The notes: a model not told the origin generated them from the sequence alone. A stretch of DNA of 64,000 bases from Malacoraja senta (GCA_038087875.1 JAXLNO010002694.1:434001-498000); one strand, 5' to 3'; counted from the stretch's first letter, positions 4,961 to 30,119 are shown. Translations and numbers: made by a program.

Positions 4961-5794
4961 TCTTCTCTGATCCCATACTGAATCCGATGGCTGTAGAAAG
5001 GTAGCTGTCCCTTTACAAGAATGATTCCAGGCCTGAGTGGGTTAGCACATGACACAAGAGAGCAGACCCAGTCCGGTCAATGACACCTTCATTAAAAGGA
5101 TTAAAAGAATAAAAACCCCGTTTTACTAGTTTAAAAAAAAAGGCCATTTGTCAGTCTGAAGAAGGGTCCCACCTCAAAACGTCAACTATTTATGTTCTCC
5201 ACAGATGCTATCTGAACAGCTGGGTTACTCCAGCACTTTTATGCAAACCAACATCTGCAGTTCGTTTTTTCTGTGTAATATGAATCGTGCCTTGAATAAG
5301 CATTGTAATAGAATATGTGTCTCGCATAACCAGTGAGAAAATGATGAACTTATGTAAAGGAGAAAGGTGGCTGAAGGCAAATGTGAGTCTCGAAAACAGA
5401 GAGGCAGGCAAATGTATACTGGGGAAAGACAGGAAAAGCTGGACTAGCTCAGCAGGTCAGATAGCATCTCTGGAGAAAAGGAATAAGTGGCATTTCAGGT
5501 CGAGTCCCTTCTTCAGACTGAGGGTCCGGGGAAGAGGGAATGAGATATATAGATGGCGATGTAGTGAGACATAGAACAAATGAATGAAAGATATGCAGAA
5601 AAGTAATGCTGAAAAGGGGAAAATGCCATTGTTAGCTGTGCTGGGTGAAAACAAGTTACAGACAATGAGACTCAACAAGACGACTTTGAAGCTGGTACGA
5701 CTTGGGAGGTGGAGTGATGGAGAAAGAGGGGATGCGAGGTTTACTTGAAGTTTGAGAAATTATTATTCATATAATGACAAGGCAGGGGAATTAC

Positions 5795-6590
5795 ATAACT
5801 GATTTGTGTCGGTCATTACTGTAGTTCTGCTCAGAACCCAGACAGCAGGTAAATGCTCCAGCAAGATATTTCCCACGGCCAGCTCAGTTGCTTGTGAGAA
5901 TTTGTCGGAACCTGACATTTCCAGCCTAAAAATACATTCTCTATCCGAGATTACATGTAAGCTAAGCGATCTAGAAGTTACATTCCAAATCAACACCAAC
6001 ACAGCTGTGGCAAAGAGCGACACTGGAACTGGTAGTAATATTATGTCTCTGGCTGAGTTTTCCAGGGTCAAGAACACTGAAACTGTCGTAAACACGAAAG
6101 CTTCATTAATTCCATTTGGGGGAGGGGAGATTCGCCCAGTTGGCAGGGTTGACCTTCAGAGCCATCTGGCGACACATGTGCACAAGCTGGACCTTTTTTT
6201 AATTGTTTCAGGCAAGGTAACGACTCTACTTGGTATTGATGCCTGCCAGGACACGGGATTGATAAGCATTGCAGAAGAGGTGCACCAACTTTCCCCCACC
6301 CAAGAATCCACTGAACAAATTCTCGCTCAGTATAAGGAACTTTTTGACAATAAGCTTGGCAAGCTACCACTCAAATATTAACACACATATGTTATGCACC
6401 TCCCGGATCCTAATTCCAGTCCGGGTCTTACCTCACAGTCACCATGTGTTACTAACGTTTTTAGCCACTAGTCATTAGTCGGGATGTCGTCACGGTGGTG
6501 ACTAATTGTAGTGTAACTTTACTATATGCTAATAAACTTGTTGGACCTTTAGTTGGTGTGTTCTTTATTAGCTCTACAATTACAGAAGAT
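5795..6590 (+). mobile_element. Ty3/Gypsy LTR-retrotransposon fragment (aspartic protease region plus probable LTR remnant)
   Basis: ORF 5806-6381 has a DTG protease motif (AKSDTGTGSNIMSL) and TLLGIDACQDTGLI...ILAQYKELFD..LGKL, typical of Gypsy pol just before RT. Confidence 0.7.
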
Positions 6591-7856
6591 ACAAAATAAT
6601 CAGTCAGGAATATGAAAGGAGGGTAGTCGAGGCCAATAGTATTAACACATTAAAAATACATTAAGACGGGTGCATGGTTAGGAAAGTTGCAGAGGTATAT
6701 GGGTCAAATGCAGCCAGCTGGGACTAGTGAGAACAGGCATCTTGGTCGACATAGGCAAGTTGGGGCAAGGGGCCCGTTTCCGTGCTGAATGACTATCGCT
6801 TGACTATTCGGAGAATGAGGGAATGAAGGAAATATGTATTTATTATCAGCTGTTCGCAATATTAAGTTTATCAAGAAGAGAGGCAGCGCACTTGGATAGA
6901 CCAAAGCAGATAAATTCCAATGACCGCAGCACAACGGTATGAATATTGAGTAGGAAGGAACTGCAGATGCTGGTTTAAACTGAAGATAGACACAAAAAGC
7001 TGGAGTAACTCACCGGGACAGACAGCATCCATGGAGAGAATGTATGGGTGACGTTCCGGGTCTGGAGTCTAACTTCAAGTAACCCTGGCATTCCCTCCAT
7101 CTCCATCCCTCTCTAAGTCGCACCAGCTTGTTTTCTCCCAACAAACAGTTAACAAGGGCCTGTTTCCTTTATCATTGTTACATTTTTGCATTTATTTGAT
7201 TCATCGTACTTTGTCTCTCAACATCATCAGTTATATCTCTCGTTTCCCTTTCCCCTGACTAGTCCGAGACGGGTCTCGACGTGAAACGTCGCCCATTCCT
7301 TCTCTCCAGACATGCTGCCTGTCCCGCTGAGTTACTCCAGTTTGTTTTGGATGTCTTTCTCCTTCTTTTGTCTTCCAATCAAAGTTGGAGTGCAGCAGCA
7401 TTGTGGCAGGGAACATATCACATCTCCAAAGGCGAGGCTCCAGTCTGAGTCATGGAGCCACACAGCATGGATTTAAATGCTTCGACCCACCTTGTCCATG
7501 CCGACCAAGTTGTCATTCGGGCTGATGAAAGACCCAAAATGCTGGAGTAACTCAGCGGGACATGCAGCACCTCTGAAAACCAAGAATGTGTGACATTTCG
7601 GGTCAAGAATATCCGCTGACATGTCTAAAGAAGGATCTTGAACCGCAAAGTTTCTTTCCGGAAATGCAACCTGTACCGCTGAGATATTCCAGCGTTTTGT
7701 GGCTATGTTCGGTGTAAATTAGCATCTGCAGTTCCTTTCTACGTATTGTCATCTGGGCAAGACCCATTTGCCTGCATTTGACCCATATATCTCTAAATCC
7801 GATCCATGCAAATGTTTAAATATCCGTTCAAACTTTCAATTACCACATAGAATGCT

Positions 7857-8140
7857 GGTGGCACAGTGGCGCAAATGATAGAGCTGCTGGTGCACAGCGC
7901 CATAGAACCAGGTTCGATCCTGACCTCAGGAACAGTCAGTGTGGAGTTTGCACGTTTTCCCTGTGGCCAAATGGGTTTTCTCCGGAGGGTCTGGTTTCCT
8001 TGTACATCCCAAAGACATAAGAGTTTATAAGTTATTTGGACCTGGTGTGCATGAGTGGATGAGAAAATTGAATAACATAGAACTAGTGTGAACGGATGAT
8101 CAGTGGTCGGCGTGGATTCAGTGTGGTAAAGGTCCATAAG
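7857..8140 (+). mobile_element. tRNA-derived V-SINE/HE1-like SINE
   Basis: A-box-like TGGCACAGTGG, B-box GGTTCGATCC and a V-domain-like ggttttctccggagggtctggtttcc. Mirror copy at about 24390-24680 (-). Confidence 0.75.
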
Positions 8141-8454
8141 AATGTATTCCCAATCTCTCAATCTACCTCATCCCTGCCCTTGCATTATTTCATTTACCTG
8201 CACTTTCTTTGCAACTGGAGCACATATTCTTCATGATTGTATTCATGTGCGGAGATGGGAGGAACCCATAGGTGAGTGTCGACACCCCCCCAGCACCATC
8301 CCAGTCCCTGCTCTATCTCACCCTCCCTCCAGCCACTCCCCTCTCCTCTCCATGCATTCAAAGTCTGTGAGGCAACACGCAACACAAACAAGCCAGACAG
8401 GTGAGGCAACACGCAACACCGACAAGCCAAATAAGGTACAGAGTTCTCAGCGTC

Positions 8455-8905
8455 CGAGACCCCTCTCCTCTGCGCCTCCTTCCTCAGGGCGAAGCGCCCC
8501 CATCTCCCAGCGGTTTCCTGGACCATCACCGTGCGCCCGTTCCGGGTGGGCGACTCGCCGGAGGCCCGCAGGATCTCTCGGGGGTCTGCTGGACCTGCTT
8601 TGGCCGGCCTTCCGCCGGGCCCTGCTGTCGCCCGCCGACCCCTACCTTCTCGTGGCTATCGGGACCGCGGTCTACTGATCCGGCTGGCCCCTGACCTGGG
8701 CCGCTCTCCCCGTCGCCGCGCTGCTAGCCCTGCTCTACCTGGCCTGCCGCCAGGTCTGCGCCGAGTTCGTGAGGCAGAAGCTGGAGGCGGTCATTGAGTG
8801 GACGTAGGTGGGGAGGACGGGGATGGGGTTATGGGTGGTGGAGGAGGTGGGGAGCGGTGGACTGCGGGAGGTGGTGGCAGCGCTGGATGACGATGGATAG
8901 CCGGA
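8455..8905 (+). pseudogene. NAT8-like pseudogene psi1 (5' half only)
   Basis: Homolog of the NAT8 5'UTR exon, with the start codon and about 12 codons deleted (ggacc-atc-accgtgcgc), a frameshift, TGA at 8676-8678 and truncation at the xQPG motif. Confidence 0.88.
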
Positions 8906-9071
8906 TCAGGTGTGGGTTAGGCGTGTCGGGTAAGGTGGGGGAAGTTTCGCAATGAGGTTTGATCTATTTTTAACGCTGCATCAGAAAAGCTGCCAACATA
9001 ATCAAAAACTTGTCAAACCACCGAGGCATTCCTCCTTCTCCTTGCACCCGCCCGGTAGAAGGTAAGGAAGC

Positions 9072-9130
9072 TTGAAAGCACGCACCACCAGACTCAGGAA
9101 CAGCTTCTCCTCTGTTATCAGACTTGTGGA
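9072..9130 (+). mobile_element. Rex1/Babar LINE ORF2 C-terminal fragment
   Basis: KARTTRLRNSFSSVIRL resembles the Rex1 C-terminal motif RTTRLRNSFFPxAIRLLN. Similar fragments at about 9850-9900, 20460-20730 and 43390-43630. Confidence 0.6.
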
Positions 9131-9949
9131 CAGTACTTCCATAAGCTTGGGGACCGGTATGGCGAAGGGGTGGATGGTGGGGGAGGTGTGGGAGGAGGTG
9201 AAGGTTTGGGGTGTGGGGCGGATGGGCTGTCCTGCTGGGGTGGAGGTGGTGGGGGGTGGGGATCATCTCCACTCCCCCTCCCCCTCCGGTACCAGCTTCG
9301 AGGGGGAGCCTGTCTCCAGACTGTCCTCAAGGAGAGGGGAGCAACCGGTAGGTAAGTCTCGACACATTCACAGCATCGTCCCAGTCCCTGCTCCCTCTCA
9401 CCCTTCCTCCTGCCCATCCCTTCTCCATGCATTCAAAGCAGGGCAGGCAACAAGGGACACATGTACAAACAATCCAAACTCGCTCGACAGGCAGAGCAAC
9501 GAGAAAGGTACAGAGTTCTCGGCGTCATAGCGCTGGGGTTGCAGGTAAAGTGCACTGTCCATAATGAAATGTAGACAAAAATGCTGGAGAAACTCAGCGG
9601 GTGAGGCAGCATCTACGGAGCGATGGAATAGGCGAAGTAGTCTGAAGGAATAGGTGAATAGTCTGAAGAAGGGTCTCGACCAGAAACGTCGCATATTCCT
9701 TCGCTCAAAAGATGCTGCCACACCCGCTGAGTTTCTCCAGCATTTTTGTCTACCTTCGATTTTTCCAGCATCTGCGGTTCTTTCTAAAATAATTGTCCAT
9801 AATGAGGTAGGTCGGAGAATCGGGATTGTACCCCAGCTTATGGAAGGGCTGTTCAGAAGCCTGGTAACAGAGGGGACGAAGCTGTCCCCTGATTCGGGTG
9901 CAAGGGAATGCTGTTGCTGCAGTTTGGGTGCGGCCTCACTCAGGCAGAG

Positions 9950-10140
9950 AAGGAGGTCCGGGACAGAAAGGGTGGAGTAGGAATTGCAAGGGGAATTAAA
10001 AGGTTTAGCAACTGGGACATCCAGCAGGTCTTGGCAGACTGAGCGCAAGTATTCGGCGAAGCGGTTTCTTAGTCTGTCTTGCCGATATTTTGAAAGCCAC
10101 ATTGGGAACACCGAACGTTGTAGATGACAATTAAAATACA
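9950..10140 (-). mobile_element. Penelope-like element GIY-YIG endonuclease fragment in the presumed NAT8 5'UTR intron
   Basis: Reads VIYxxRCSQCGFQNIGKTxxRLxNRFAEYLRSVCQDLLDVPVAKPFNSP. Paralogous copies at about 11270-11520 (-), 18610-18850 (+) and 22340-22570 (+). Confidence 0.75.
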
Positions 10141-10467
10141 TTTACACAGGTTCATGGATAGGAATGGTTTGGAGCAATATGTGCAAAATGTGGGCAGGTG
10201 GGACCTGCGTAAATGGGTCATCTGGTGTAGATGGGAACGATGGGTCGAATGGCCTGTTTCTCTGCTCGCTGACTCTATGAGGTTAGCGGAGATGAATGTG
10301 AATCTCTGTCAATTGACCTTTCTCTCTCTGCAGATCCGGACCCCTCTGTATCTCCTTCTTCAGGCTGGAGCTCCTCAACCTCCACCACTGATAAGCACGA
10401 ATGAGTGGCATATAAAAAGCTGGAGAAAGTCAGCGGGTGAGGCAGCATCTATGGAGCGAAGGAATGG

Positions 10468-10500: not shown

Positions 10501-10639
10501 GAATGGGTGACGTTTCGGGTCTAGACCTTTCATCAGGTCAATACTATCCGCTGACATGTCTGAAGAAGGGTCTCGACCCGCAACGTTTCTTTCCAGAAAT
10601 GCAAACTGACCCGCTGGTTGCTGTGTAAGGTTCATGACC

Positions 10640-10922
10640 CTGAACCGAGCTGCTGCCAGCTCCTCCACCTCTCGGTTCACCGGCGGTTCCGGGGTCTGGG
10701 CCGCAGACTGACCCACCGTGTGCTGTGGTTCGCCCGGGACAGCGGGACGGCAGAGAGTCGGTCCTGGACACCACCACCGCCCAGCATCCCACCATCCGGC
10801 TCTATTGTGTCCAGGGCTTCCAGGTGGCCAGGGACAAGGTGTCATTGCGCGGACAGGCCCTGCTCTCCTGCGTCGATTGCGAGATGAGGCTGGGTTCTGT
10901 GGAAGCCGGGTATTCCCACTGA
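10640..10922 (+). pseudogene. NAT8-like pseudogene psi2 (3' half of CDS; 3' flank continues to about 11100)
   Basis: EPSCCQLLHLSVHRRFRGLGRRLTHRVLWFARDSG, then a frameshift, then ESVLDTTTAQHPTIRLYCVQGFQV...CEMRL. The upstream acceptor (cag 10331-10333) is retained, but the N-terminal half is replaced by repeat fragments. Confidence 0.88.
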
Positions 10923-11782
10923 AGTGTACCCGGGACACGGGGAGTGCTGACATATCGATAAAGGAAACTTTCCAACGAGTTATAGTCCCTGATCTCATTG
11001 ATGTGGGGAGCGATGGCGATGCAGGTGAGGTGGGGAGTGCGGGAAGGGGAGCCGAGTGGAAACGGTTAGCAAGCATGAAGTGGAGATTGAACCAATGGCG
11101 GGGAGGGACTGGGCTGCATCTACAACTCTTTATGATATCCTGGGGTCTTCGGCAGAGCTGTTCCCAAAACAAGCTGTGATGCATCGCGTCCGGAAGCTTC
11201 CTCTGGTGCATCTGCAGACGTTTATACGAGTCATTAGTTACAGAAAATGGGGGGGAGATGCTGTTCGTGAATGTGAATATGAGTTGCTGTTCCTGCAGTT
11301 TGTGTGCGGCCACACTCAGAGAGAAGAGGGAGGCTCGGGACAGAGAGGTTGGAGTAGGAATTGGAAGGGTAATTAAAAGGTTTAGCGACTGGGAGATCCA
11401 GCAGGTCTTGGCAGGCTGGGCGCAAATATTCGGCGAAGCGGTTTCCTAGTCTATCTTGGCCGATATATTGAAAACCACATTGGGAACACCAAATGCAGTA
11501 GATGACAAATAAAATACATTTGGACAGGTTGATGGATTGGAAAAGTTTGGAGCAATATGGGCAAAAATGTGGGCAGGTGAGACCTGCGTAAATGGGACAT
11601 CTGGTGTGCATGGGTTGGGCCGAAGGGCATGTTTCTCTGCTCTCTGGCTCTATGAGGTTAGAGGAGATGAATGTGAATCTCTGTCTCAATTGACCTTTCT
11701 CTCTGTGCAGATCCGGACCCCTCTCCTCTGCATCTCCTTCTTCAGGCCGAAGCTTCTCCATCTCTCAGCGGCTCCCTGGACC

Positions 11783-12502
11783 ATGGTGGCCGCCCTCAAG
11801 GCCGGAGATGGTCCCCGCTTCACCGTGCGCCCGTTCATGGCCGGCGACTCGCCGGAGGCCCGCAGGATCTTCTCGGAGGGTCTGCTGGACCAGCCTTGGC
11901 CGGGCTTCCGCGGGGCCCTGCTGTCGTCCGCCGCTCCATGCCTCCTCCTGGCTGCCGGGGCCGCCGTCTACGTAGCCAGCTGGTCGCTGGCCTGGGCCGC
12001 TCTGCCCGTCGCCGCGCTGCTAGCCCTGCTCTACCTGGCCTGCCGCATGGTCTATACCAACTACCTGAGGGAAATGCTGGAGGCGGACATGGCGGACATC
12101 GAGGGGACGTACGTGAGGAGTCCGGGGGCGGGTTTCTGGGTGGTGGAGGAGGAGGGGGGAGGCGGTGGGCTGCGGGCGGTGGTGGCGGCACAGGCGGCCG
12201 AGGGACAGCCGGGCTGCTGCCTGCTCATCCGCCTCGCTGTCGACCGGCGATGCCAGGGCCTAGGCCTGGGCCGCAGAATGATCCGCTGGGTGCTGGAGTT
12301 CGCCCGGGACAGCGGCTATCGGGAGTGCGTCCTGGACACCACCACTGTCCAGCTTCCCGCCATCAGGCTCTACCGGACCCAGGGCTTTCGGGTGACCAGG
12401 GACATGGTGCCATTGCCCGGACAACCCCTGCTCTCCTGCGTCACCAACATCTATCTGTGCGAGATGAGGTTGTATCCTCTGGATGCTGGGAATTACCACT
12501 GA
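11783..12502 (+). CDS. NAT8/camello-family GNAT N-acetyltransferase, copy A (239 aa, single coding exon, one hydrophobic segment)
   Basis: Starts at ccATGg 11783, 72 nt after a polypyrimidine/cag acceptor (11710). Motifs DMADIEGTYVRSPGAGFWVVE, motif A RLAVDRRCQGLGLG and VLEFARDSGYRECVLDTTTVQLPAIRLYRTQGF align with vertebrate NAT8 (DMSDITKSY...[39 protein letters not shown], recalled). Orthology within the family is unresolved, so no symbol is given. Confidence 0.93.
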   Translation: MVAALKAGDGPRFTVRPFMAGDSPEARRIFSEGLLDQPWPGFRGALLSSAAPCLLLAAGAAVYVASWSLAWAALPVAALLALLYLACRMVYTNYLREMLEADMADIEGTYVRSPGAGFWVVEEEGGGGGLRAVVAAQAAEGQPGCCLLIRLAVDRRCQGLGLGRRMIRWVLEFARDSGYRECVLDTTTVQLPAIRLYRTQGFRVTRDMVPLPGQPLLSCVTNIYLCEMRLYPLDAGNYH

Positions 12503-12769
12503 AGGGGTCCCGGGACACGGTGGGTGTTGACATATCGATAAAGGAAACTTTCCAACGAGATGTAGGCTTTGAGCTCATTGGTGTGCGGAGCGATGGAGTA
12601 GATGGTTGGGGTTGGGGAGTGCGGGAAGGGGAGGAAAGTGGAGGTGTGGTCTGGGGAGTGGTGGGGTGGGAATTGCGGGAAAGGGAGGGGAGTGGAGGGG
12701 TGGTCTGTGGAGTGGAGGTCAAGGCATTTGGAGCAGATCGAGCTTGAGTGGGATTTTCAATGAAGTACC

Positions 12770-12870
12770 CCCTCAACCTTCTAAACTCCAGCGAGTAGAG
12801 ACCCAGTGCTGTCAAACGCTCATCATATGCTAACCCACTCAGGCCTGGAATCATTCTTGTAAAGGGACAT
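12770..12870 (-). mobile_element. CR1 LINE ORF2 fragment
   Basis: MIPGLSGLAYDERLTALGLYSLEFRRLRG. Part of it (12827-12910, including flank) is duplicated in inverted orientation at 4970-5050. Confidence 0.8.
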
Positions 12871-13459
12871 CTACTTTCCTACAACCATCGGATTCGGTAT
12901 GGGATCTGAGTAGATTGGCGCCTAATGGTCAGTGTGGACACAATGGGCCAACGTGCCCGTTTCTATGCTGTATGACTAGCTACATCAGGGAAGAGAAGGG
13001 TATGGAGATACAATTAACTGCAGGAGTAACTCAGATGAACAGGTAGCATCTCTGGAAGGAAGGAATGTGTGACTTTCCGGAACGAGATCCTTCTTCACAC
13101 TGAGAGCCAGGGGAGAGGGAGACATAGATATATAGATGTTTCAGGTGTGAAAACAGTTCAAAGCGGAAGTTGAACAAGGAAAATATAGAATGGTTCATTG
13201 ACGCTGAAGGGAAGGTGACAACGAGGCAAAATCGATAAAGTTGGATCAGGAGGACAGTGAAACTAGTTGGAGAACTAGGATGGGGGAGGGACGGAGAGAG
13301 GAAAAGCAAGGGTTACTTGAAGTTAGAGAAATCAATATTCATACCGCTAGGTGGCTGAGGGGCCTGTTTCCACGCTACATCTCTAAGATGTGCTGCCTAC
13401 ACTGCTCTGGCCAGCACTATCCCCGACGGGCAGAGGCTTCAGCATTCTGACGGATATTT

Positions 13460-13680
13460 ACTGCTTCTCTTCATTTCTCCCGTCTCTCTCTCTAAACCTA
13501 TCTTTCTCTCCTTCTGTCTCATCCTTTTCACTCTGTCACTCTCTTTCGCTTTCGTTCACATCCTCCCCTTCTGCCTCTCTCCACTGTCCCTGCCTCTCTC
13601 TTAGTCTATTTCTCCGTCTTTCTCTCTCTGTCGGTCTATCTCTGTCTTTCTCTGCCTTTCTCCCTCTCTTGCCCTCCCAC
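13460..13680 (+). repeat. Degenerate (TC)n pyrimidine tract
   Basis: About 220 nt of almost pure C/T in tctctc runs. Confidence 0.85.
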
Positions 13681-13748
13681 GGCGCTCACTCATTGTTGCC
13701 CCTCACCGCCCCTCCGGCGGCTCTCCTGGCTCCCTCCTTCCTGCTCGT

Positions 13749-13880
13749 CCCGCGGCCCTTCATCCTCGCCGCCACTCCCGCGGCCCTCCATCCTCGCCAC
13801 CCCTCCCGTGGCCATTCAACATCGCTGCCACTCCCGCGACCCTCCATCCTCACTGCCACTCCCGCGACCCTTCATCCCCA
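13749..13880 (+). repeat. 28-bp minisatellite, about 5 copies
   Basis: Units start at 13749, 13777, 13805, 13833 and 13861; consensus about cccgcgrcccttcatcctcgcygccact. Confidence 0.85.
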
Positions 13881-13959
13881 CGGCGATCCCTCCTCGCTCC
13901 CCCTCCCGCGGCGCTCCCTCCTGCCTGCCCCTCCTGTGGCGCTCCAACGGGAAGCTGGA

Positions 13960-16900
13960 GATGGTTAGCAGGTAGACGGTAGTACGGAGGCAGAGGTTTC
14001 TGCAACGGAGCTCACTGTACCACCGCATGCCACTGGTCGGATGAGGAGGAGGCACGGGTCCTCCGACACGGACTACGGCCCTGATGTCCAGGGACAAGCT
14101 GAAGGGGGGCCTTCACCCCCAGTTGAGGTGGAGTCCCCAGGGCACGCTTCCTCTGAGCTGGAGGATGCCTGTGTAGTACAGGGACCACCTGAGAGTTGTG
14201 ACGCACTACCCGTGGGAGCTGTTCCCCCAGAGAACGCGTCCCTTGGCTTACAGGATGACCAGGGGCAGTCTGAAGGGTAAGACTTGAGTGTGGGGGTGGG
14301 TCCCCTGCCTGTGCTCCCCGTTGAGGCTACAAGCCCAGATGAGGGGAGACTCCAGGAACATCGGCCACAGTGAGGTGATTCCCCTGGTAGTGGAGGACGG
14401 GGACTCTCTGGGTGACGATGCAAGGGCGGGTACCATGGGTGCGAAGAAGGGCAGGATCTTTTCGCATGGTGTCTTCCAGTTGGACAGGTCCGTTCACTGC
14501 CAGCCCCGGAGATTTCCTCCGACTTCATTGTCCCCAATCCGGTACAGAGGGCGGTGGGAATGTGCAGGAGACTGGCCAATTACTCGGCAGCTTGTCACAG
14601 TCAGGGGTACCGGTACTTGCCCCCGTCACTGATCCTGTGGGTGAGATGGTGACGGTGGAGGGACCAGGTGACGTGGCCGGCACGCCCATTTCACAGGGAG
14701 GGGTGAGTGAGGCAGCTGAGAGTAGGAACCTTCCAGACTCGGACATTGAGTGCGAGGACGAGGGTGATGCGGACTCCGTCGACAGTGAGTTGACGGACTG
14801 CCCTAACCGCAACCCTGTGTCCCGACTTGTTGAAGTCTGGGAAATCCGGAAGTTCTTGAAGGACCAGAGGGAGTAGGAATAAGGCCGAGTTAGCTGCTGA
14901 CCGCTGGTTGGACCTGGCGAGACCCATGCAGTCCATTTTTGCCATCCATCGGAAGAAAGGAAAGGCGGCGGGACTCTCGAAAAAATGAGCGGCCCCAGTT
15001 CCAAGTGCTTTTTGAAGAGAGGGCGGAAGGCAGATGCGGCTCCGATCCTTCACCGGGTGCTGGTAAAAGATCTAGTGTAAATTCAAAATGAAGCTCACTA
15101 TAGCCAGCCTGAATATCAATGGGGGCAGGTGGTCTCTCCGCAGGTTTCACCAGCTCTCGGTGCGCAGGGATGGGAGGTACGCGGTGAGCTTCTTGCAGGA
15201 AACACACACTGTGGCTAGTGGTGAACCCACCTGGCTCTTGGAGTGGGAGGGGGGGTCTACATGAGCCATCTTAACTCCAATTCGAGTGAAGTGGCTTTCC
15301 TGTTGTCCCCATCTTTTCAGCCGGAGATCCTCAAGGTGCAGAAAATTGTACCAGGCCGGTTGCTGTATCTGGCGGTGCGCCTGGTTGGTGTGCCATTACA
15401 CTTTATCAATGTGTACGCCCCCAAGATTGGCGCAATGCAGACGCGCCTAACCTGGGAGGTGACCACTTTGTTCAATATCCTCGACCGTGGAGAGTGTGTT
15501 TTCCTTGGGGGAGGTGTTAATTGTACCGTCGAGGCGCGAGATCGCTCTGGCATTCAGCGTGACCCGGCAGCAGTGAAGACATTAAGGGAGCCTCTTTTGA
15601 GCTATTTCCATTCTGACTCTAGTGCCTTCTCGTACAGGTTTGAGGGGGTCGTTCCCGTATTGACTGCTTGTACGTTTCCAAGGCCTATGTCTCCTGTGTC
15701 TCGGCGTCCTCCATGCGGCCGGTGCCATGCTCGGACCACTGCCTGGTGCGAGTGGACTTTATCTCAGCGCTCACACGGGCAGGGTCCGTGTGGAGGTATT
15801 TTAATAACCAGCTGCTGGAGGATCGCCGATTCCGGGATTCGTTCAGGAAGTTCTGGGCAAAGTGGAGAGAGTGGCAGGGGCGTTTCCTTTCCTAAGGCAG
15901 TGGTGGGACGTGGGGAAGAACTACAGCAGTGTGTTTTGCCAAGACTATGCGAGGGGGCGACCTAGGGGTGGGTGTCCGAGATCGGACGGCTTGAGAGAGA
16001 GCTGCTCGACTTGGAGTCTCGCGTGGGTCAGACTGGTGGGGATTCTTGCGAGTGGCAGTAGTACCAGGAGTAGAAGGGTGCGCTGAGGGACTTGCAGATT
16101 CGGCGGTCCCGGGGCGCGTATGTGCAGTCACGAGTCTAGATGTTGCACGATCTGTACCAGGCCTCTCCCTTTTTCTTCTCCCTGGAGAATTGGCGAGGAG
16201 CCCGCAGGCAGCTCGTTGAGTTGCTTGCGGATGATGGCTCCTCTGTCACAGATCCAGAGAGCATCGGTACCTCGGTTGGATCTTAATACAGGACTCTGTT
16301 CTCCGCGGGTACATCTAGTGGGGATGCGCGAGTGTCCTGTGGGATGGCTTACCCGTAGTGTGCAAAGTGGTGGCTGAGCGCCTCGATGATCCCTTAAATC
16401 TGGAGGAGCTGACTGCTACCCTGCATCAGCTCAGGTGGGGGGGGGGGGGGTGGCAAGTCTCCAGGACTGGATGCGCTGACGGTGGAGTTTCTTAGAGCCT
16501 TTTGGGATGTTCTGGGGGGTGACTATAGGAAAGTCCTGGGGGTGAGACTGGCGACCGGGGAGATGCCCTTCTCGTGGCGCAGGACAGTCGTTGTCCTGCT
16601 GCCCAAGAAAGGCGATCTCCGCCTTTTGAAGAACTGGCGTCCGGTCTCTCTCCTCAGCACAGGATACAAAGTCTTTGCACGGGCAATGGCGAATTGCCTG
16701 GGTCCCGTGCTGTCCCAAGTGCTCAACCCACACCTGTCCTACACAGTCCCGGGCCGGTCCATCCAGAACAATATCCATCTGGTCCAGGACCTGACCCATC
16801 TGTCCCAGGGGGCTGGACAGTCAGTCGCCTTTCTCTCCCTTGACCAGGAGAAGGCGTATGACAGGGTGGATCACGACTACCTTCTTGGGATTCTGCAGGC

Positions 16901-17993: not shown

Positions 17994-18399
17994 GGCTCAG
18001 AAACTGCCAGAAATTCTGCCCACAACAGGTGAGAGACTCTGTGAGAGAGAAGGGGGAGAGGGGGAAGAATTTGTTCATCTTTTCTGCAGATCACAGCAAT
18101 GAAGGAGGAAAATCTGTCCTGGACTGGATCTCACAGGGAGCCAACGAAGGGAGGGAGAAAAATACGGGGGTGAGGTTTAATACTAGCAGGGGGGATACTT
18201 ACTGATGGGCCGAAGGTACTCCTCCTGGGCTAGTACAGGCCTGATGGGTCGAAGGGACAAAAAAATCTGATTGAAATCTCAGTGAAAGGCACGTTTTCTG
18301 GACTTTTCCCAGCCTGGCGCGGGCCTTTTGGGCCAAAATCCTCCTCCTTGGTTAATACGGGCATTAGGGGCAAAAGGGACTGGTTTCTCAGCTAAGGAG

Positions 18400-19235
18400 C
18401 TACAGAGGGGTCCGGATCTGCAGAGAGAGAAAAGTCAATTGAGACAGAGATTCACATTCATCTCCGCTAATCACATCGAGTCAGCGAGCAGAGGAACAGG
18501 CCATTCGACCCATCGTTCCCATCCACACCAGATGTCCCATTTACGCAGGTCCCACCTGCCCACATTTTGCCCATATTGCTCCAAACCATTCCTATCCATG
18601 AACCTGTGTAAATATATTTTAATTGTCATCTACAACGTTCGGTGTTCCCAATGTGGCTTTCAAAACATCGGCAAGACAGACTAGGAAACCGCTTCGCCGA
18701 ATACTTGCACTCAGTCTGCCAAGACATGCTGGATCTCCCAGTTGCTAAACCTTTTAATTCCCCTTGCAATTCCTACTCCAGCCTTTCTGTCCCGAGCCTC
18801 CTTCTCTGCCTGAGTGAGGCCGCACCCAAACTGCAGCAACAGCATTCCCTTGCACCTGAATCAGGGGACAGCTTCGTCCCCTCTATTACCATGCTTCTGA
18901 ACAGCCCTTCCATAAGCTGGGGGTACAGTCCCGATTCTCCGACCTATCTCATTATGGACAATTGTTTTAGAAAGAACTGCAGGTGCTGGAAAAATCGAAG
19001 GTAGTCAAAAATGCTGGAGAAACTCAGCGGGTGCGGCAGCAGCTTTTGAGCGAGGGAATAGGCGACGTTTCTGGTCGAGACCCTTCTTCAGACTATTCAC
19101 CTATTCCTTCAGACTACTTCGCCTATTCCATCGCTCCATAGATGCTGCCTCACCCGCTGAGTTTCTCCAGCATTTTTGTCTACCTTCGATTTTTCCAGCA
19201 TCTGCAGTTCTTTCTAAAACAATTGTCCATAATGA
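18400..19235 (-). pseudogene. Orphan copy of the NAT8 upstream intron and splice acceptor, with no coding sequence
   Basis: Reverse complement matches about 9560-10345, including ttctctctctgcag/atccggacccctct. Sequence beyond it is unrelated to the NAT8 CDS. Confidence 0.7.
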
Positions 19236-21347
19236 GGTAGGTGGCTGTACCCGTGATGGGTGGACAGGAGTGAGATATGGAGGAATTAATTTTTGTTTCA
19301 CATTCGCCTCAAATGTATGAAATAAGAAACAAGAGGAAGAAATTAACCAAGTGGTACATGTGGATCATCTGTTCGAATAATTTTATTGCAATTAATTAAT
19401 ACATTCAATTAAGGTACAGACCAAATGTGTAGGTAGGAACTGCAGATGCTGGTTTAAACCGAAGATAGACACAATATGCTGGAGTAACTCGGCGGGACAG
19501 GCAGCATCTCTGGTGACGTTTCGGGTCGAGACCCGTCTGAAGATTCCTTCTCTCCAGAGATGCTGCCTGTCCCGCTGAGTTACTCCTGCATTTTGTGTTT
19601 ATCTTCAATTAAGGGACAATTTGAATTGAATGTATATACAATTGATGTGTTTGTGTGCAGTCTAAGTTTATGTGCCTGTGACGCTGCTGCAAGCAATGTT
19701 TTCAATGGATCTGCACCGCACCGTACTTGTGCAAATGGCAATAATCTCCACTCGATTTGGCTATCGCCTCTTGATTTAAATTCCCCTATCATCAGGGAAA
19801 ACGGGTGTGACCGTCCCCCTTGTTTACGACCATCCTGACTTTATAAACTTATTTCTGATCACCCCTCAACCTCATTCACTCCATGGAAAATAACCACAGC
19901 CTATCCAGCCTCTCCAGATACCAGAAGTCCTCCTGATCCGGCAACAACCTGGTGAATCTTGTCTGCATCCTGAGCAGCTTAACGACATCCTTCCCACATC
20001 AATGCTCCAAGTGCCTGTTTCATAACTTCATAAGTGATCGGAGTAGAATTAGGCCATCCGGCCCATCAATTCTACTCCACCATTCAATCGTGGCTGATCT
20101 ATCTCTCCCTCCTAACCCCATTCTCATGCCTTCTCCCCATAACCCCTGACACTGGTATGATGGTCATTAACTTCTTGTATGTTTTACTATTATATATTAT
20201 ATGTGAGTTATTGGGTTCACGGGCCTGTTTGGTTGCAGCAATGAAGAATTTCAAAAGAATAGTCAAGGAATCAAGCGTCTTTAATTGTCACTTACACTGA
20301 GACTGGAACAATTAAATTCTTACTTACAAAAGCAGAGCACATCTGAAAACACAAAGCACCTAAATAATCTATAATCTAATACAAATTATTAAGTTAATCA
20401 CCACAATACATGCAAGCAGGCACACAATTTTCTTAGTGCAACCAAAATAATTCAATAGAAGTTCCTAGTTGAGGTTGGTGCTGTGTCGGGTTCATCATCC
20501 TGAACCTGACAGTGGTGCCCTTTGGAGACAGCATCTTTTACAGATCCTTTCGATAGTGGGAAGGTCAGTACCAATGATGGACCGGCCAGTGTCTACCACT
20601 CTCTATAATCACCTCCATTCTTATGCATCAAGTTGCCAAACCAGGCCGTGATGCAACCAGTCAATATGTTCCCCACCGTACACCTGTAGAAGTAGAAGAG
20701 CATACTAGCTGACCTGCTGTATCACCTCAATCATCCAAGGAAGTGTAGTCGTGTATGGACACAAGGAACTGCAGATGCATGAATTTTGCGTGGAACACAC
20801 AATGAGCTGGAGTAATTCAGTGGGTCAGGCATCATATCTGGAGAAGATGGAAATGTGATGTTTCTGGTTGCGACACTTCTTCTCAGAGAGAAGAGGTGCC
20901 GGTGGGCTTTATTTGTGATCACATCATAGTGCCGGGCCTAGGACAGATCTTCACAGATATCCCAACCCAGGAACTTGAAGTTGTTGCCTCTCTATATCGC
21001 AGGCTGACCGGCGATCCATGTAGTCCCATGACCTCGGTTTAAGGTGTAGAAAGGAACTGCAGATGCTGATCTAAACCAGCACCTGCAGTTGCTTCCTAAA
21101 CCCGACTTTAAGGTATCCACCATGAACTGCATATGGGACCAGGCCTCACCTCGATCTGCTCCAACTGCCTTCACCTCCACTCCCCACCCCTCCACTCTAT
21201 ACACCACCCCTCCACTTCCCTCTCCTTCCCACACTCCCCACCCCCACCATCATCTCCATCGCTCCCCACACCAATGAGCTCAGAGACTATATTTCATTGG
21301 GCAGTTTCCTTTATTGACATGTCAACACCCTCTGTCACGGTACATCT

Positions 21348-22067
21348 TCACTGGTAATTCCCAGCATCCAGATGATACAACCTCATCTCGCACAGATAGA
21401 TGTTGGTGACCCACGAGAGCAGGACCCATCCGGACATGGGCTCGTCGTCCCTGGTCAGCCGAAAGCCCTGGGCCTGGTAGAGCCCGATGGCGGGAAGGAC
21501 AAAAGTGGAGGTGTCCAAGACGCACTCTCGGTAGCCGCTGTCCCGGGCGAACGCCAGCACCCGGCGGGTCAGTCTGCGGCCCAAGCCTAGGCCCCGGCAT
21601 CGCCGGTCGACAGCGAGACGGAGGAGCTGGCAGCAGCCCGGCTCTCCCTCGGCCTCCTGCGCCGCCACCACCCCCCGCAGCCCACCGCCTCCCCCTTGCT
21701 CCTCCACCACCCAGAACCCCGCCCCCTGCCTCCTCATGTACGTCCCCTCAATGTCCGCCATGTCCGCCTCCAGCGCCTCCCTGAGGTAGTTGGTATAGAC
21801 CGTGCGACAGGCCAGGTAGAGCAGGGCTAGCAGCGCGGCGACGGACAGAGCGGCCCAGCCCAGCGACCAGCTGGCTATGTAGAAGGCGGCCCCGGCAGCC
21901 AGGAGGAGGCAGGGAGCTGCGGGCGACCTCATTGCCCCGCGGGAGGCCGCCCAAGGCTGGTCCATCATACCCTCCGAAAATATCCTGCGGGCTTCCGGCG
22001 AGTCGCCGGCCCGGAACGGGCGCACGGTGAAGCGTGGACCATCGCCGGCCTTGAGGGCGGCCGCCAT
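21348..22067 (-). CDS. NAT8/camello-family GNAT N-acetyltransferase, copy B (239 aa)
   Basis: Open 720-nt frame MAAALKAGDGPRFTVRPF...LDAGNYQ*, about 81% identical to copy A (hand count). Acceptor at 22140, candidate upstream donor ag/GTAAGT at 23100 and AATAAA at 21310-21315. Confidence 0.93.
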   Translation of the reverse strand: MAAALKAGDGPRFTVRPFRAGDSPEARRIFSEGMMDQPWAASRGAMRSPAAPCLLLAAGAAFYIASWSLGWAALSVAALLALLYLACRTVYTNYLREALEADMADIEGTYMRRQGAGFWVVEEQGGGGGLRGVVAAQEAEGEPGCCQLLRLAVDRRCRGLGLGRRLTRRVLAFARDSGYRECVLDTSTFVLPAIGLYQAQGFRLTRDDEPMSGWVLLSWVTNIYLCEMRLYHLDAGNYQ

Positions 22068-23599
22068 GGTCCAGGGAGCCGCTGAGAGATGGAGAAGCTT
22101 CGGCCTGAAGAAGGAAATGCAGAGGAGAGGGGTCAGGATCTGCAGAGAGAGAAAGGTCAATTGAGACAGAGATTCACATTCATCTCCTCTAACCTCATAC
22201 AGCCAGAGAGCAGAGAAATATGCCCTTCGGCCCAACTTTCACAGTCACACCAGATGTCCCATTTACGCAGGTCCCACCTGCCCACATTTTGCACATATTG
22301 CTCCAAACCATTCCTATCCATGAACCTGTCGAAATGTATTTTAATTGTCATCTACATCGTTCGGTGTTCCCAATGTGGCTTTCAAAACATCGGCAAGACA
22401 GACGAGGGAAACCGCTTCGCCGAATACTTGTACTCGGTCTGCCAAGACCTGCTGGATCTCCCAGTTGCTAAACTTTTTAATTCCCCTTGCAATTCCTACT
22501 CCACCCTTTCTGTCCCGAGCCTCCTTCTCTGCCTGAGTGAGGCCGCACCCAAACTGCAGCAACAGCGTTCCCTTCCACCTGAATCAGGGGACAGCTTCGT
22601 CCCCTCTGTTATCAGGCTTCTGAACAGCCCTTCCATAAGCCATGGTATAGTCCCGATTCTCCGACCTACCTCATTATGGACAATTGTTTTAGAAAGAACT
22701 GCAGATGCTGGAAAAATCGAAGGTAGACAAAAGCGCTGGAAAAACTCAGTGGGTGCGGCAGCATCTTTTGAGCGAGGACTAGGCGACGTTTCTGGTCGAG
22801 ACCCTTCTTCAGACTACTTCGCCTTCCATCGCTCCATAGATGCTGCCTCACGCGCTGAGTTTCTCCAGCATTTTTGTATACTTTTCATTATGGTCAGTGC
22901 ACCTTACCTGCAACTCCAGCGCTATGACGCCGTGAACTCTGTACCTTTCTCGTTGCTCTACCTGTCGGCGCGAGTTTGGATTGTTTGTACATGTGTCCTT
23001 GTTGGCTGCCCTGCTTTGAATGCATGGAGAGGGGATGGGCAGGAGGAAGGATGAGAGGGGGCAGGGACTGGGACGATGCTGTGAATGTGTCGAGACTTAC
23101 CTACCGGTTGCTCCCCTCTCCTTGAGGACAGTCTGGAGACAGGCTCCCGCTCGAAGCTGGTACCGGAGGGGGAGGGGGAGTGGAGATGATCCCCATCCCC
23201 CACCCACCCCTCCCCCACCCCACCAGGACAGCCATGCGCCCCACACCGCGCCCACCCCCAAACCTTCACCTCCTCCCACACCTCCCCGCCATCCACCCCT
23301 TCCATATACCTGGCCCTCCCTCCCCACACCCCCCACTCCCGTCAAATCATCATAACTCCTCCTGTGATGAATAGGAACGGTTCCCAAGCTTATGGAAGGA
23401 CTGTTCAGAAGTTGATAAGAGAGGAGAGCTGTTCCTGAGTCTGGTGGTGCGTGCTTTCAAGCTTCCTTATTTCTACCGGACGGGTTCAAAGAGAAGAAGG
23501 AATGGCTCGGTGGTTTGACAAGTTTTTGATTATGTTGGCTGCTTTTCTGATGCAGCGTTAAATGTAGATCAAACCTCATTGCGAAACTTCCCTTCCCTA

Positions 23600-24075
23600 C
23601 CCGACACGCCTACCCTGATCCGGCTATCCATCGTCATCCATAGCGCTGCCATCGTCTCCGCAGCCCACCGCCCCCCACCTCTTCACCTCTTCCACCACCC
23701 AGAACCCACCCCGTCCTCCCCACCTACGTCCACTCAATGTCCGCCTCCAGCTTCTGCCTCACGAACACGGCGCAGACCTGGTGGCAGGCCAGGTAGAGCT
23801 GTGCTAGCAGCGCGGCGACGGGGAGAGCAGCCCAGGTCAGGGGCCAGCCGGATCCGTAGACCGCGGTCCCGATAGCCACGAGGAGGTAGGGATCGGCGGG
23901 CGACAGCAGGGCCCGGCGGAAGGCCGGCCAAAGCAGGTCAAGCAGACCCTCCGATAGATCCTGCGGGCCTCCAGCGAGTCGCCCACCCGGAACGGGCGCA
24001 CGGTGATGGTCCAGGAAGCCGCTGGGAGGTGGGGGCGCTTCGCCCTGAGGAAGGAGGCGCAGAGAGGGGTCTCCG
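23600..24075 (-). pseudogene. NAT8-like pseudogene psi1' (mirror of psi1)
   Basis: Same start-codon deletion as psi1. EGLLDLLWPAFRRALLSPADPYLL...RQKLEADIEWT* ends at 23724; truncated. Confidence 0.88.
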
Positions 24076-25944
24076 ACGCTGAGAACTCTGCATCTTATTT
24101 GGCTTGTCGGTGTTGCGCGTTGCCTCACCTGTCTGGCTTGTTTGTGTTGCGTGTTGCCTCACTTACTTTGAATGCATGGAGAGGAGAGGGGAGTGGCTGG
24201 AGGGAGGGTGAGATAGAGCAGGGACTGGGATGGTGCTGGGGGGGTGTCGACACTCACCTATGGGTTCCTCCCATCTCCGCACATGAATACAATCATGAAG
24301 AATATGTGCTCCAGTTGCAAAGAAAATGCAGGTAAAAGAAATAATGCAAGGGCAGGGATGAGGCAGATTGAGAGATTGGGAATACATTCTTATGGACCTT
24401 CACCACACTGAATCCACGCCAACCATTGATCCTCCGTTCACACTAGGTCTATGTTATTCAATTTTCTCATCCACCCCTACACACCAGGGCCAATTAACCT
24501 ATAAACTCTTATGTCTTTGGGATATGCGAGGAAACCAGACCCTTCGGAGAAAACCCATTTGGCCACAGTGAAACCGTGCAAACTCCACACTGACTGCTCC
24601 TGAAGTCTGGATCGAACCTGGTTCTATGGCGCTGAGCACCAGCAGCTCTATCAGTTGCGCCACTGTGCCACCAGCATTCTATGTGGTAATTGAAACTTTG
24701 AACGGATATTTAAACATTTCCATGGATCCGATTTAGAGAGATTTGGGTCAAATGCAGGCAAATGGGTCTTGCCCAGATGTCAATATGTAGAAAGGAACTT
24801 CAGATGCTAATTTACACCGAAGATAGCCACAAAACGCTGGAATATCTCAGGGGTACAGGTTGCATTTCTGGAAAGAAACGTTGCGGGTCAAGATCCTTCT
24901 TCAGACATGTCAGCGGATATTCTTGAACCGAAATGTCTCTCATTCTTGCTTTTCAGAGGTGCTGCATGTCCCGCTGAGTTACTCCAGCATTTTGGATATT
25001 TCATCAGCCCGAATGACTACTTGGTCGGCATGGACAAGGTGGGGCGAAGCATTTAAATCCATGCTGTATGGCTCCATGACTCAGACTGGAGCCTAGCCTT
25101 TGGAGATGTTACATGTTCCCTGCCACAATGCTGCTGCACTCCAACTTTGCTTGGAAGACAAAGGAAGGATAAGGACAGCCAAAATAAACTGGAGTAACTC
25201 AGCGGGACAGGCAGCGTGTCTGGAGAGAAGGGATGGGCGACGTTTCAGGTCGAGACCCGTCTCAGACTAGTCAGGGGAAAGGGAAACGAGAGATATAACT
25301 GATGAAGTTGAGAGGCAAAGTACGATGAAAGCAATAAATGCACAAATGTAACAATGATAAAGGAAGCAGGCCATTGTTACCTGTTTGTTGGGAGAAAACA
25401 AGAAGCTGGTGCGACTTGGGTGTGGGAGGGATGGAGAGGGAGGGAATGCCAGGGTTATTTGAAGTTAGACTCCAGACCCGAAACGTCACCCATACATTCT
25501 CTCCATAGATGCTGTCTGTTCCGGTGAGTTCCTCCAGCTTTTTGTGTCTATCTTCCGTTTAAACCAGCATCTGCAGTTCCTTCCTACTCAATATTCATAC
25601 CGCTGGGCTGCGGTCATTGGAATGTATCTGCTTTGGTCTAACCAAGTGCTGTGCCACGCTTCTTGATAAACTTAATAGTGCTAACAGCTGATAATAAATA
25701 CATATTTCCTTCATTCCCTCATTCTCCGAATAGTCAAGCGATAGTCATTCAGCACGGAAATAGGCCCCTTGCCCCAACTTGCCTATGTCGACCAAAATGC
25801 CTGTTCTCACTAGTCCCAGCTGCCTGCATTTGACCCATATACCTGTGCAACTTTCCTAACCATGCACCCGTCTTAATGTATTTTTAATGTGTTAATACTA
25901 TTGGCCTCAATTACCCTCCTTTCATATTACTGACAGATTATTTT

Positions 25945-26770
25945 GTAGCTTCGGTAATTGTAGAGGTAATAAAGAACACACCAACTAAAGGTCCAACAAG
26001 TTTATTAGCATAAATAAAGTTACACTACAAGTAGTCACCACCGTGACGACATCCCGACTAATGACTAGTGGCTAAAAACTTTAGTAACATATGGTGACTG
26101 TGAGGTAAGACCCGGACTGGAATTAGGATCCGGGAGGTGTATAACATGTGTGTGTTAATATTTGAGTGGTAGCTTGCCAAGCTTATTGTCAAAAAGTTCC
26201 TTATACTGAGCGAGAATTTGTTCAGTGGATTCTTGGGTGGGGGGGAGTTGGTGCACCTCTTCTGCAATGCTTATCAATCCCGTGTCCAGGCAGTCATCAA
26301 TACCAAGTAGAGTCGTTACCTTGCCTGAAACAATTTTTTAAAAGTTCAGCTTGTGCAAATGTGTCGCCAGATGGCTCTGAAGGTCAACCCTGCCAATTGG
26401 GCGAACCTCTCCTCCCCCAAATGGAATTAATGAAGCTTTCGTGTTTACGACAGTGTCAGTGTTCTTGACCCTGGAAAACTCAGCCAGAGACATAATATTA
26501 CTACGAGTTCCATTGTCGATCTTTGCCAAAGCTGTGTTGGTGTTGATTTGGAATGTAACTTCTAGATCGCTTAGCTTACATGTAATCTCGGGTAGAGAAT
26601 GTATTTTAGGCTGGAAATGTCAGGTTCCCACAAATTTTCACAAGGAACTGAGCTGGATTGGACAGGCCGTGGGAAATATCTTGCTGGAGCAGATTTACCT
26701 GCTGTCTGGGTTCTGAGCAGAACTACAGTAATGACCGACACAAATCAGTTATGTAATTCCCCTGCCTTGT
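25945..26770 (-). mobile_element. Gypsy protease-region fragment (mirror of 5795-6590)
   Basis: AKIDNGTRSNIMSLAEFSRVKNT... Confidence 0.7.
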
Positions 26771-27835
26771 CAATATATGAATATTGATTTCTCTAACTTC
26801 TATTAACCCCTCTCCATCACTCCACCTCCCAAGTCGTACCAGCTTCAAAGTCGTCTTGTTCAGTCTCATTGTCTGTAATTAGTTTTCACCCAGCACAGCT
26901 AACAATGGCCCGTTCCCCTTTTCATCATTACTTTTCTGCATATCTTTCATTCATTTTTCTATATCTCACTACATCGACATCTATTTATCTAATTCCCCCT
27001 TCTCTTGACCCTCAGTCTGAAGAAGGGACTCGACCCGAAATGCCACTTATTCCTTTTCTCCAGAGATGCTATCTGACCTGCTGAGCTATTGCAGCTTTTC
27101 TGTCTTTCCCCAGTATACATTTGCCTGCCTCTCTGTTTATGAGACTCACATTTGCCTTCAGCCACCTTTCGCCTTTACATAAGTTCATGTTTTTCTCATT
27201 GGTTACGTGAGGCACATATTCTATTACAGTGCATATTCAAGGCACGGTTCATATTACATAGAAACAATGAACTGCAGATATTGGTTTGCATAAAACTGCT
27301 GGAGCAACCCAGCTGTTCAGACAGCATCTCTGGAGAACATAAATAGTTGACGTTTTGAGGTGGGACTCTTCTTCAGACTCCTCGCAAAAGAAGTCATAAA
27401 GGGCTGGAGTAACTCAGCGGGTAAGGCAGTATCTCTGGTGGACATAAATGAGTGACATTTTGGGTTAGGACCATGCTTCAGACTAATTATGGGAGAGGGG
27501 GGCGGGAAAACAGGGAAGGAAGCTAGAAGAGTGGAGGAGCTGGATAAAGCTTGACGTCCTCTGTTTAAATTTAACTACGTCACTTTCAGACACAATATAA
27601 AACCCCATCACATTATGAGCACTCTTCCCCTAAGGCCCACTTTACAGAAAGATTATCAAGTAAACCCTTTTTATTTCAGAAACAAGGTCTAAAATTACAA
27701 TTTCCCTGGTGTTTGTCTTCCAGTTGATCCATATACATTGGCAAGTATGGGGCGACATGGTGCAGCGGTAGAGTTGCTGCCTCACAGTGCCAGAGACCCA
27801 GGTTTGATCCTGACCCTGGGTACTGTCTGTCTGGA

Positions 27836-30110: not shown

Positions 30111-30119
30111 ATCTATGTA

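Follow-up and report, generated by a model that had tools for sequence, protein, structure and literature searches.

A cluster of predicted NAT8/camello-type acetyltransferase genes in the skate Malacoraja senta: an older gene pair joined to a younger inverted duplication

The window of the Malacoraja senta genome analysed in this work, a 64-kb stretch (GCA_038087875.1 JAXLNO010002694.1:434001-498000; coordinates are window positions unless another sequence is named), carries two intact genes, A and B, which we assign to the NAT8/camello-type GNAT acetyltransferases, together with pseudogenes of the same family, in a pair of inverted arms. The arms consist of a young inverted duplication, comprising an outer flank, the pseudogene psi1 and a repeat-rich upstream unit (U), joined to the older paralogous pair A and B. 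We consider it probable that the region is a local version of a skate-specific NAT8/camello cluster in which the A/B pair is the older component, the inverted block was added to it later, and a gene designated X, present as an intact open reading frame (ORF) in Amblyraja radiata, was subsequently lost from the plus-strand copy of the block.

Self-BLAST and a repeat search of the window delimit three blocks of inverted homology (5153-9156 with 27379-23378, 9150-10382 with 23316-22086, and 11286-12670 with 22566-21183), giving arms of about 7.5 and 6.2 kb with a spacer of about 8.5 kb between them. The gene copies found by tblastn with protein A across the whole 64 kb are psi1, psi2, A, B and psi1', with no further ones; psi1' is also recognisable in the self-BLAST through DNA homology to the B coding sequence over 23620-24006. 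A gene unit begins with the repeat-rich U, continues with one coding exon of 239 codons and closes with a short 3' flank. The products of A and B are 80.8% identical at the amino-acid level (tblastn), and the two genes, on the plus and minus strands respectively, converge. An orphan upstream unit (Table 1) has no coding sequence behind it that tblastn with protein A could match to its left. A preliminary description of this DNA had listed at least six copies or remnants of one gene unit (psi1, psi2, A, the orphan, B and psi1') with A and B converging; all six were recovered by tblastn and self-BLAST, and the opposite strands of A and B were confirmed. The arms of about 7.6 and 6.2 kb around an 8.4-kb spacer that it gave also agree with the self-BLAST; as a refinement, the arms are made up of two strata.

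Duplicated repeat-rich regions are error-prone in assembly, and one of the arms might therefore be suspected of being an artefact, either a haplotig or a contig mis-joined in inverted orientation. Many family members are indeed located on small unplaced scaffolds in A. radiata and Leucoraja erinacea, and a 200-N gap is found 1.3 kb beyond arm 2. However, that gap (28707-28906) is the sole N run in the window, and both arms and the spacer belong to a single gap-free stretch. The arms also differ by 5.8% plus 33 indels, far beyond allelic divergence, and their content is not the same, B with its downstream region dB being confined to arm 2 and psi2 with A to arm 1. An artefact of this kind appears to us extremely improbable.

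The two age layers are visible in the identity values. The segment 5153-10382 aligns with 27379-22086 at 94.16% gap-free identity over 5170 columns, and this identity is uniform along the alignment (92.5-96.2% per 400 bp), whereas the A and B gene units (11286-12670 and 22566-21183) are 88.55% identical (89.5% in the upstream part, 89.0% in the coding part and 83.0% downstream). The two values differ with Fisher p = 8e-12. An origin of A and B as direct products of the inverted duplication was considered and is ruled out by these identity strata together with the tree described below. The earlier view that the cluster is built on a large inverted duplication is thus right in that the duplication is present, but A and B predate it.

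Table 1. Features of the NAT8/camello-type cluster and its surroundings in the M. senta window (a slash within a motif marks the splice site)
Feature	Coordinates	Strand	Basis or remark
LINE copy L1	2746..4952	-	200 bp outside arm 1
Young inverted duplication, arm 1: flank F, psi1 and U1	5153..10382	+	94.16% to 27379-22086
psi1, pseudogene fragment, aa 13-151	8525..8927	+	tblastn: 3 stops and a frameshift
U1, upstream unit, putative non-coding/first exon	9150..10382	+	alignable with the first exon and splice donor modelled for A. radiata P0001
psi2, pseudogene fragment, aa 137-239	10627..11060	+	tblastn 10627-10919: frameshift and indels; DNA homology to 11060
U2, partial upstream unit of A	11285..11782	+	acceptor CTGTGCAG/ATCC; exon 2 would start at 11711
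Gene A coding exon, 239 aa and stop, intact	11783..12502	+	ORF; PF00583 E = 1.2e-14
dA, region downstream of A	12503..14770	+	A. radiata has the orthologous region 3' of P0001
LINE copy L2, in the spacer (endonuclease-like ORF and reverse transcriptase)	14756..16967 (to 17126)	+	RVT_1 match in ORF 16482-17126
Orphan upstream unit (3' part of intron and acceptor)	18394..19242	-	95.5% to 9568-10357 (inverted), 90% to 22126-22884
dB, region downstream of B	19242..21347	-	collinear with the sequence 3' of ORF X in A. radiata
Gene B coding exon, 239 aa and stop, intact	21348..22067	-	ORF; PF00583 E = 3.6e-14
Young inverted duplication, arm 2: flank F, psi1' and U3	22086..27379	-	outer flank homologous to A. 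radiata past 27379
U3, upstream unit of B	22086..23316	-	donor and acceptor motifs
psi1', arm-2 duplicate of psi1	23620..24007	-	tblastn 24007-23736, aa 13-103, frameshift

For the comparison with A. radiata, 46 kb of its chromosomal locus (CM021395.1, about 20.27-20.31 Mb; "arad" coordinates) were joined from three overlapping loci with identical overlaps, and a further locus, L002, was taken from the unplaced 266-kb scaffold JAAGWR010000062.1 (44,593-65,312). On one strand of the chromosomal locus the order is flank, psi1, U, X, dB, U', psi2, a transposon, the gene model P0001 and dA, and four minus-strand copies of other subclades follow after dA. The A. radiata cluster resembles that of the window in amino-acid sequence (78-85% identity), in the presence of psi1, U, psi2 and the gene units, and in having genes on two strands that converge. 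The window differs from it by the inverted second copy of flank-psi1-U and by the lack of X in the plus-strand copy. No orthologues of the four minus-strand A. radiata genes were found within the 64-kb window.

Protein A is 85% identical to P0001, and window positions 11591-13009 and 13008-14770, which include A and dA, are collinear with P0001 and the sequence 3' of it; arad 14800-15190 and 16064-17885 are the counterparts of 12617-13009 and 13008-14770. In the inverted direction, window 19242-27379 is collinear with the A. radiata series flank-psi1-U-X-dB; here 19242-20107 and 20103-24324 match arad 9514-8277 and 7465-3232, the latter as a single 4.3-kb alignment, and B is collinear with X, an intact 239-aa ORF at arad 5494-6210 (CM021395.1, about 20,274,505-20,275,221). 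ORF X is absent from the called genes at the A. radiata locus, and the exon-1 donor upstream of it (about 4620) is AT and not GT, which may explain why it is left without a gene model. In the DNA tree of the gene units A pairs with P0001 (88/93), while B falls outside that pair and is nearest to X. A and B thus appear to be older paralogues with separate counterparts in A. radiata, P0001 for A and X for B.

Both pseudogenes of arm 1 have A. radiata orthologues as well, psi1 at arad 3554-3881 and L002 6743-6964 and psi2 at arad 10376-10904 and L002 8847-9280, so that both must already have been dead in the common ancestor. The nearly abutting ranges of psi1 and psi2 (Table 1) suggested that they might be the halves of one gene split by an insertion; this idea was rejected because the fragments are separate and stand in the same order at the two A. 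radiata loci, with the full gene X between them at one of these. L002 itself contains a second copy of the series flank-psi1-U-psi2-U-gene (P0002) that is 84-90% identical to the chromosomal locus and hence too divergent for a haplotig, which suggests that the chromosome assembly does not contain the whole of the A. radiata cluster. The flank part is single-copy within the 46 kb of the chromosomal locus, and in this the arms are distinct from dispersed repeats.

The relative age of the inverted block is indicated by the psi1-U segment, in which the two arms of the window group together against both A. radiata copies (99/98), the alternative groupings being rejected by the approximately unbiased (AU) test (p-AU 0.013 and 0.0009). 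The homology of arm 2 to L002 runs past 27379 to 28376 (L002 3372-4497 corresponds to window 28376-27263), whereas that of arm 1 ends exactly at 5153; position 5153 is therefore the duplication junction, and arm 2 has kept the ancestral surroundings on its outer side. In its 3' part, U1 is 94.7% identical to the orphan U compared with 91.0% to U3, and the counts of shared sites are 53 for U1 and the orphan, 25 for U1 and U3, and 15 for U3 and the orphan.

From these comparisons we infer the following order of rearrangements. A and B, as tandem paralogues, would have existed as distinct genes before the Amblyraja lineage branched off. Later, some 9 kb of DNA, including flank-psi1-U and probably reaching through X-dB-U' (18394-27379 in the inverted copy), would have been duplicated in inverted orientation, so that B came to converge on A. 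Recombination between the U units on either side then most likely removed X and dB from the plus-strand copy, and this would leave a hybrid U1 abutting psi2.

Several observations weigh against this order of events. The pairing of B with X is weakly supported (62/51) and a clade of A and B is not rejected by the AU test (p = 0.135), so that the pre-split age of A and B rests mainly on the identity strata and the collinearity. In addition, A. radiata also possesses two copies of flank-psi1-U, one on the chromosome and one in L002, which are 11% apart, and L002 already has psi2 immediately after U, the layout of arm 1; an older date for both the duplication and the loss of X, with homogenisation of the window's arms afterwards, is therefore conceivable. 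Finally, the inverted LINE pair beside the arm edge and in the spacer suggests a possible other route to the present arrangement.

In its full form, the first of these alternatives states that the duplication of flank-psi1-U predates the split from Amblyraja and that the 94% identity of the arms is the result of arm-length gene conversion between close inverted repeats, that is, of concerted evolution. It would account for the distance between the A. radiata copies, which equals or exceeds the between-species distance of 9-10.6%, for the arm-1 layout of L002, where the gene comes after U and psi2, and for the mosaic distances, the A. radiata copies being closer to each other in psi2 and not in psi1-U. 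The identity of the arms is, however, uniform along 5.2 kb without patchy tracts, neither arm is measurably closer to either A. radiata copy, and arm 1 has a clean edge at 5153 that is lacking in L002, while the flank of arm 2 continues. We regard this scenario as conceivable but doubtful.

The second alternative is a direct tandem segmental duplication followed by inversion of the interval 4953-14755 through recombination between inverted copies of a long interspersed nuclear element (LINE). Of the two copies, L1 is 200 bp away from the outer edge of arm 1 and L2 lies where dA ends. The copies face in opposite directions, have their 5' boundary in common and are identical at 92.8% of gap-free positions, a value near the 94% of the arms. 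Flipping the interval back would put all gene copies on one strand, as they are in Rhinoraja longicauda. There is nevertheless no direct evidence for such an inversion, LINEs of the L1/L2 and related families are abundant across the window, and A. radiata already has convergent NAT8-like genes without these LINE copies in the region compared. This route seems unlikely to us. The LINE pair and the arms taken together as one simple inverted copy were also considered and are ruled out by the wrong order of the pieces. We would give little credence to a more elaborate proposal that unites a recent micro-inversion of about 13 kb by staggered breaks, marked by the convergence of A and B and leaving inverted 9-kb duplications at both breakpoints, with adaptive diversification of the substrate range of skate-specific, weakly constrained NAT8-like enzymes acting in xenobiotic mercapturate-type or secretory-pathway acetylation.

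In the predicted gene structure, U supplies the short exon 1, the splice donor that follows it and the greater part of the intron. In A. radiata, the P0001 model joins a short first exon in U' to an acceptor located 72 nt 5' of the ATG. The donor of this model, GTTGCAG/GTAARG, is kept in the window both in U1 (GTTGCAG/GTAAAG at 9544/9545) and in U3 (GTTGCAG/GTAAGG at 22908/22907 on the minus strand, motif 22914-22902). The acceptor motif is present four times, at 10326-10344 (unused, before psi2), 11703-11721 (A), 18407-18425 (minus strand, orphan) and 22129-22147 (B). The acceptors of A and B are each 72 nt upstream of the respective ATG, that in U2 being the one used by the P0001 model, and both genes have an uninterrupted 720-nt ORF with the whole coding sequence in one exon. 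Exon 1 of A is accordingly predicted to end at 9544 and its exon 2 to start at 11711, with a 2.2-kb intron that probably holds psi2; for B the corresponding predicted positions are 22908 and 22139. It speaks against these models that the exon-1 usage is taken over from an automated gene model of another species, A. radiata.

The ratios of nonsynonymous to synonymous substitution (dN/dS, omega) are 0.72 for A and B, 0.68 for A and P0001 and 0.85 for B and X, and several other pairs give 0.5-0.6, the whole range being 0.51-0.85. Outside the N-terminus, the 46 amino-acid differences of the A-B pair have an even density of 0.19-0.24 per residue; neither clustering of these differences along the linear sequence nor, with omega below 1, positive selection is indicated. 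The amino-acid constraint on most residues of A and B appears to be weak, and the bootstrap interval of the A-B omega includes 1, which is a point against selection on these genes. The state of the reading frames points in the other direction. The non-coding arms, with 28 indels of frameshifting length per 302 substitutions, provide a neutral indel rate, at which about 7.3 frameshifts would be expected among the 79 A-B differences; the probability of none is 0.0007, that of no stop codon from random substitutions is 0.09, and the joint neutral probability of no frameshift and no stop in the A-B pair is about 7e-5. Such a lack of frameshifts and stops would be very improbable under neutrality and indicates that A and B have been kept open by selection.

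A or B, or both, might still have been recently inactivated or be functionless, with their frames remaining open by chance, a supposition in line with the high omega values and with the uncalled state and altered donor of X in A. radiata. Besides the low joint probability just given, it is opposed by the preservation of the acetyl-CoA motif R-x-x-G-x-G and of near-invariant residues of the family, by the intact donor and acceptor motifs of both genes, and by the condition of the true pseudogenes in the same arms, which are full of stops and frameshifts. We consider it very improbable.

The assignment of A and B to NAT8/camello-type GNAT acetyltransferases, proposed already in the preliminary description, is borne out by Pfam, database matches, predicted fold and phylogeny. 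Both proteins match PF00583 and PF13508 above the cut-offs and contain the acetyl-CoA motif R-R-C-Q/R-G-L-G-L-G; G161 is invariant and R158 near-invariant in a 40-sequence alignment of the family. The nearest database proteins are 70-85% identical and all come from skates (A. radiata, L. erinacea and R. longicauda), where they bear the NCBI names N-acetyltransferase 8-like, CML1, 8F1-like and N-acetylaspartate synthetase-like, and remoter relatives named NAT8, NAT8B, CML and NAT8F3 are found in sharks, lungfish, coelacanth, birds, a monotreme and cyclostomes. An AlphaFold (AF2) model built from the 40-sequence alignment has a predicted local distance difference test score (pLDDT) of 92 and consists of an N-terminal strand, a long hydrophobic helical hairpin (aa 50-100) and a GNAT core. 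The helices 50-66 and 69-100 are modelled at pLDDT >90, and the Kyte-Doolittle hydropathy exceeds 1.6 over aa 44-92 in A and aa 64-92 in B. In a Foldseek search against the Swiss-Prot models, NAT8, NAT8B, NAT8F and camello proteins fill ranks 1-15, aligned over the full length with E about 1e-20 and template modelling (TM) scores of 0.84-0.93, while NAT14 and bacterial GNATs have far lower scores. A sequence search of the PDB for a solved structure of a family member gave generic GNATs only.

In a 30-protein tree made for family placement (node values given in pairs), NAT8L forms a clade of its own (100/99) that leaves out the elasmobranch proteins, those of skates included; the tetrapod NAT8/CML proteins (96/93) and the elasmobranch proteins (95/94) also form clades. 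The deep order of the elasmobranch, tetrapod NAT8/CML, lungfish/coelacanth and cyclostome groups is not settled in this tree. Some of the skate and lungfish members carry the NCBI name 'N-acetylaspartate synthetase-like'. A and B have their highest identity among the Swiss-Prot fold matches (35-36%) to NAT8L, and the core fold is common to both, but NAT8L has an N-terminal extension of about 70 aa and a TM score, by hit, of 0.65-0.67.

Mammalian NAT8 and NAT8B are known as cysteinyl-S-conjugate N-acetyltransferase and as the endoplasmic reticulum lysine acetyltransferases ATase2 and ATase1. They are similar to A and B in full-length fold (TM 0.84-0.90), in size (222-227 vs 239 aa) and in the succession of N-terminal strand, hydrophobic helical hairpin and GNAT core; the sequence identity, however, is just 27-31%, and the tetrapod NAT8/CML proteins are a separate clade. 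ATase1/2 have been described in the literature as type II membrane proteins of the GNAT superfamily. By homology, the skate proteins may be membrane-anchored GNATs of the secretory pathway that N-acetylate small-molecule amines (e.g. cysteine S-conjugates) or lysines.

The rodent Nat8 family (Nat8, Nat8b, Nat8f1-f7 / Cml1-5) and Xenopus camello proteins have the same fold and architecture as the skate proteins, and the rodent family is likewise a lineage-specific multi-copy expansion; hagfish and bichir each have several near-identical copies of NAT8-family proteins. The rodent and Xenopus expansions are nevertheless independent of that in skates, whose copies are monophyletic in the tree to the exclusion of all of them. 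All skate copies form one clade (100/98), sister to a single sequence from the electric ray Narcine, and the horn shark (Heterodontus) has a single called gene within +/-10 kb. For these reasons the expansion is skate-specific (Rajiformes) within batoids and not elasmobranch-wide; of the lineage-specific elasmobranch expansion supposed earlier, the lineage specificity stands and the elasmobranch-wide extent does not.

At least eight copies are present in A. radiata, namely six within the 46 kb of CM021395.1 (X, P0001 and the four minus-strand copies, two of which are truncated to 159 and 203 aa) and at least two on the 266-kb unplaced scaffold. R. longicauda has at least four intact genes and fragments (adjoining P0004) on one chromosome, and in L. 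erinacea small scaffolds carry two or more intact copies along with two out-of-frame models. The latter two, P0013 and P0015 ('uncharacterized protein'), have a NAT8-like N-terminal start followed by a shifted frame and look like frameshifted pseudogenes annotated as proteins. The out-of-frame peptide of these models is also found among the window ORFs, at 21322-21600.

We interpret the locus as a birth-and-death multigene cluster, as had been proposed for it. The intact genes A and B stand beside psi1, psi2 and psi1' with their stops and/or frameshifts, and the gene content varies between species. In the DNA tree, cross-species pairs are formed by A and P0001, by P0008 and Rlon_P0006 (100/99) and by m24859 and Rlon_P0004 (100/100); grouping by species is absent for the gene units and present for the flank-psi1-U arms. 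Literature searches found no papers joining NAT8 with elasmobranchs, skates or cartilaginous fish, in keeping with the preliminary description, which did not recognise the cluster as described. The cluster is unpublished rather than unseen, since multi-copy clusters have been automatically annotated by NCBI in A. radiata, L. erinacea and R. longicauda under such names as NAT8-like, CML1 and NAT8F1-like.

The surroundings of the cluster are rich in repeats. An interspersed repeat of about 70-250 bp occurs at dozens of sites in the window and at all skate loci, often in inverted pairs (examples are 9568-9812, 18998-19242, 10400-10477 and 41693-42002), and one such pair forms a near-palindrome inside the upstream unit U. 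Dense retroelement arrays occupy 27837-31000, 35415-37438 and 49000-63400, with RVT_1 ORFs at 28909-30018 and 35540-37438. No ORF recognisable as B2M appeared in a plain listing of the ORFs of 37.5-43.5 kb. The right half of the window also contains recent retroelement duplicates of 95-99% identity, both direct and inverted, such as 49044-49573 with 56555-57086 and 35494-36129 with 59714-60347.

Taken as a whole, the locus is a well-resolved case of the turnover of a small enzyme family in a slowly evolving vertebrate lineage: its units stand in tandem, its pseudogenes are ancient and shared between species, an inverted duplication is of younger date, and one gene was probably lost by recombination. 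For gene annotation, the appropriate call for A and for B is a NAT8-like gene of two exons, psi2 falling within the intron of A, and an intact paralogue in A. radiata has so far gone uncalled. Lineage-specific expansion is the norm for the NAT8/CML family and nothing in this picture is overturned; what the data add is a separate expansion of the family in skates, unconnected with that of rodents, and the cluster may serve as a starting point for asking about the substrates of the skate enzymes.

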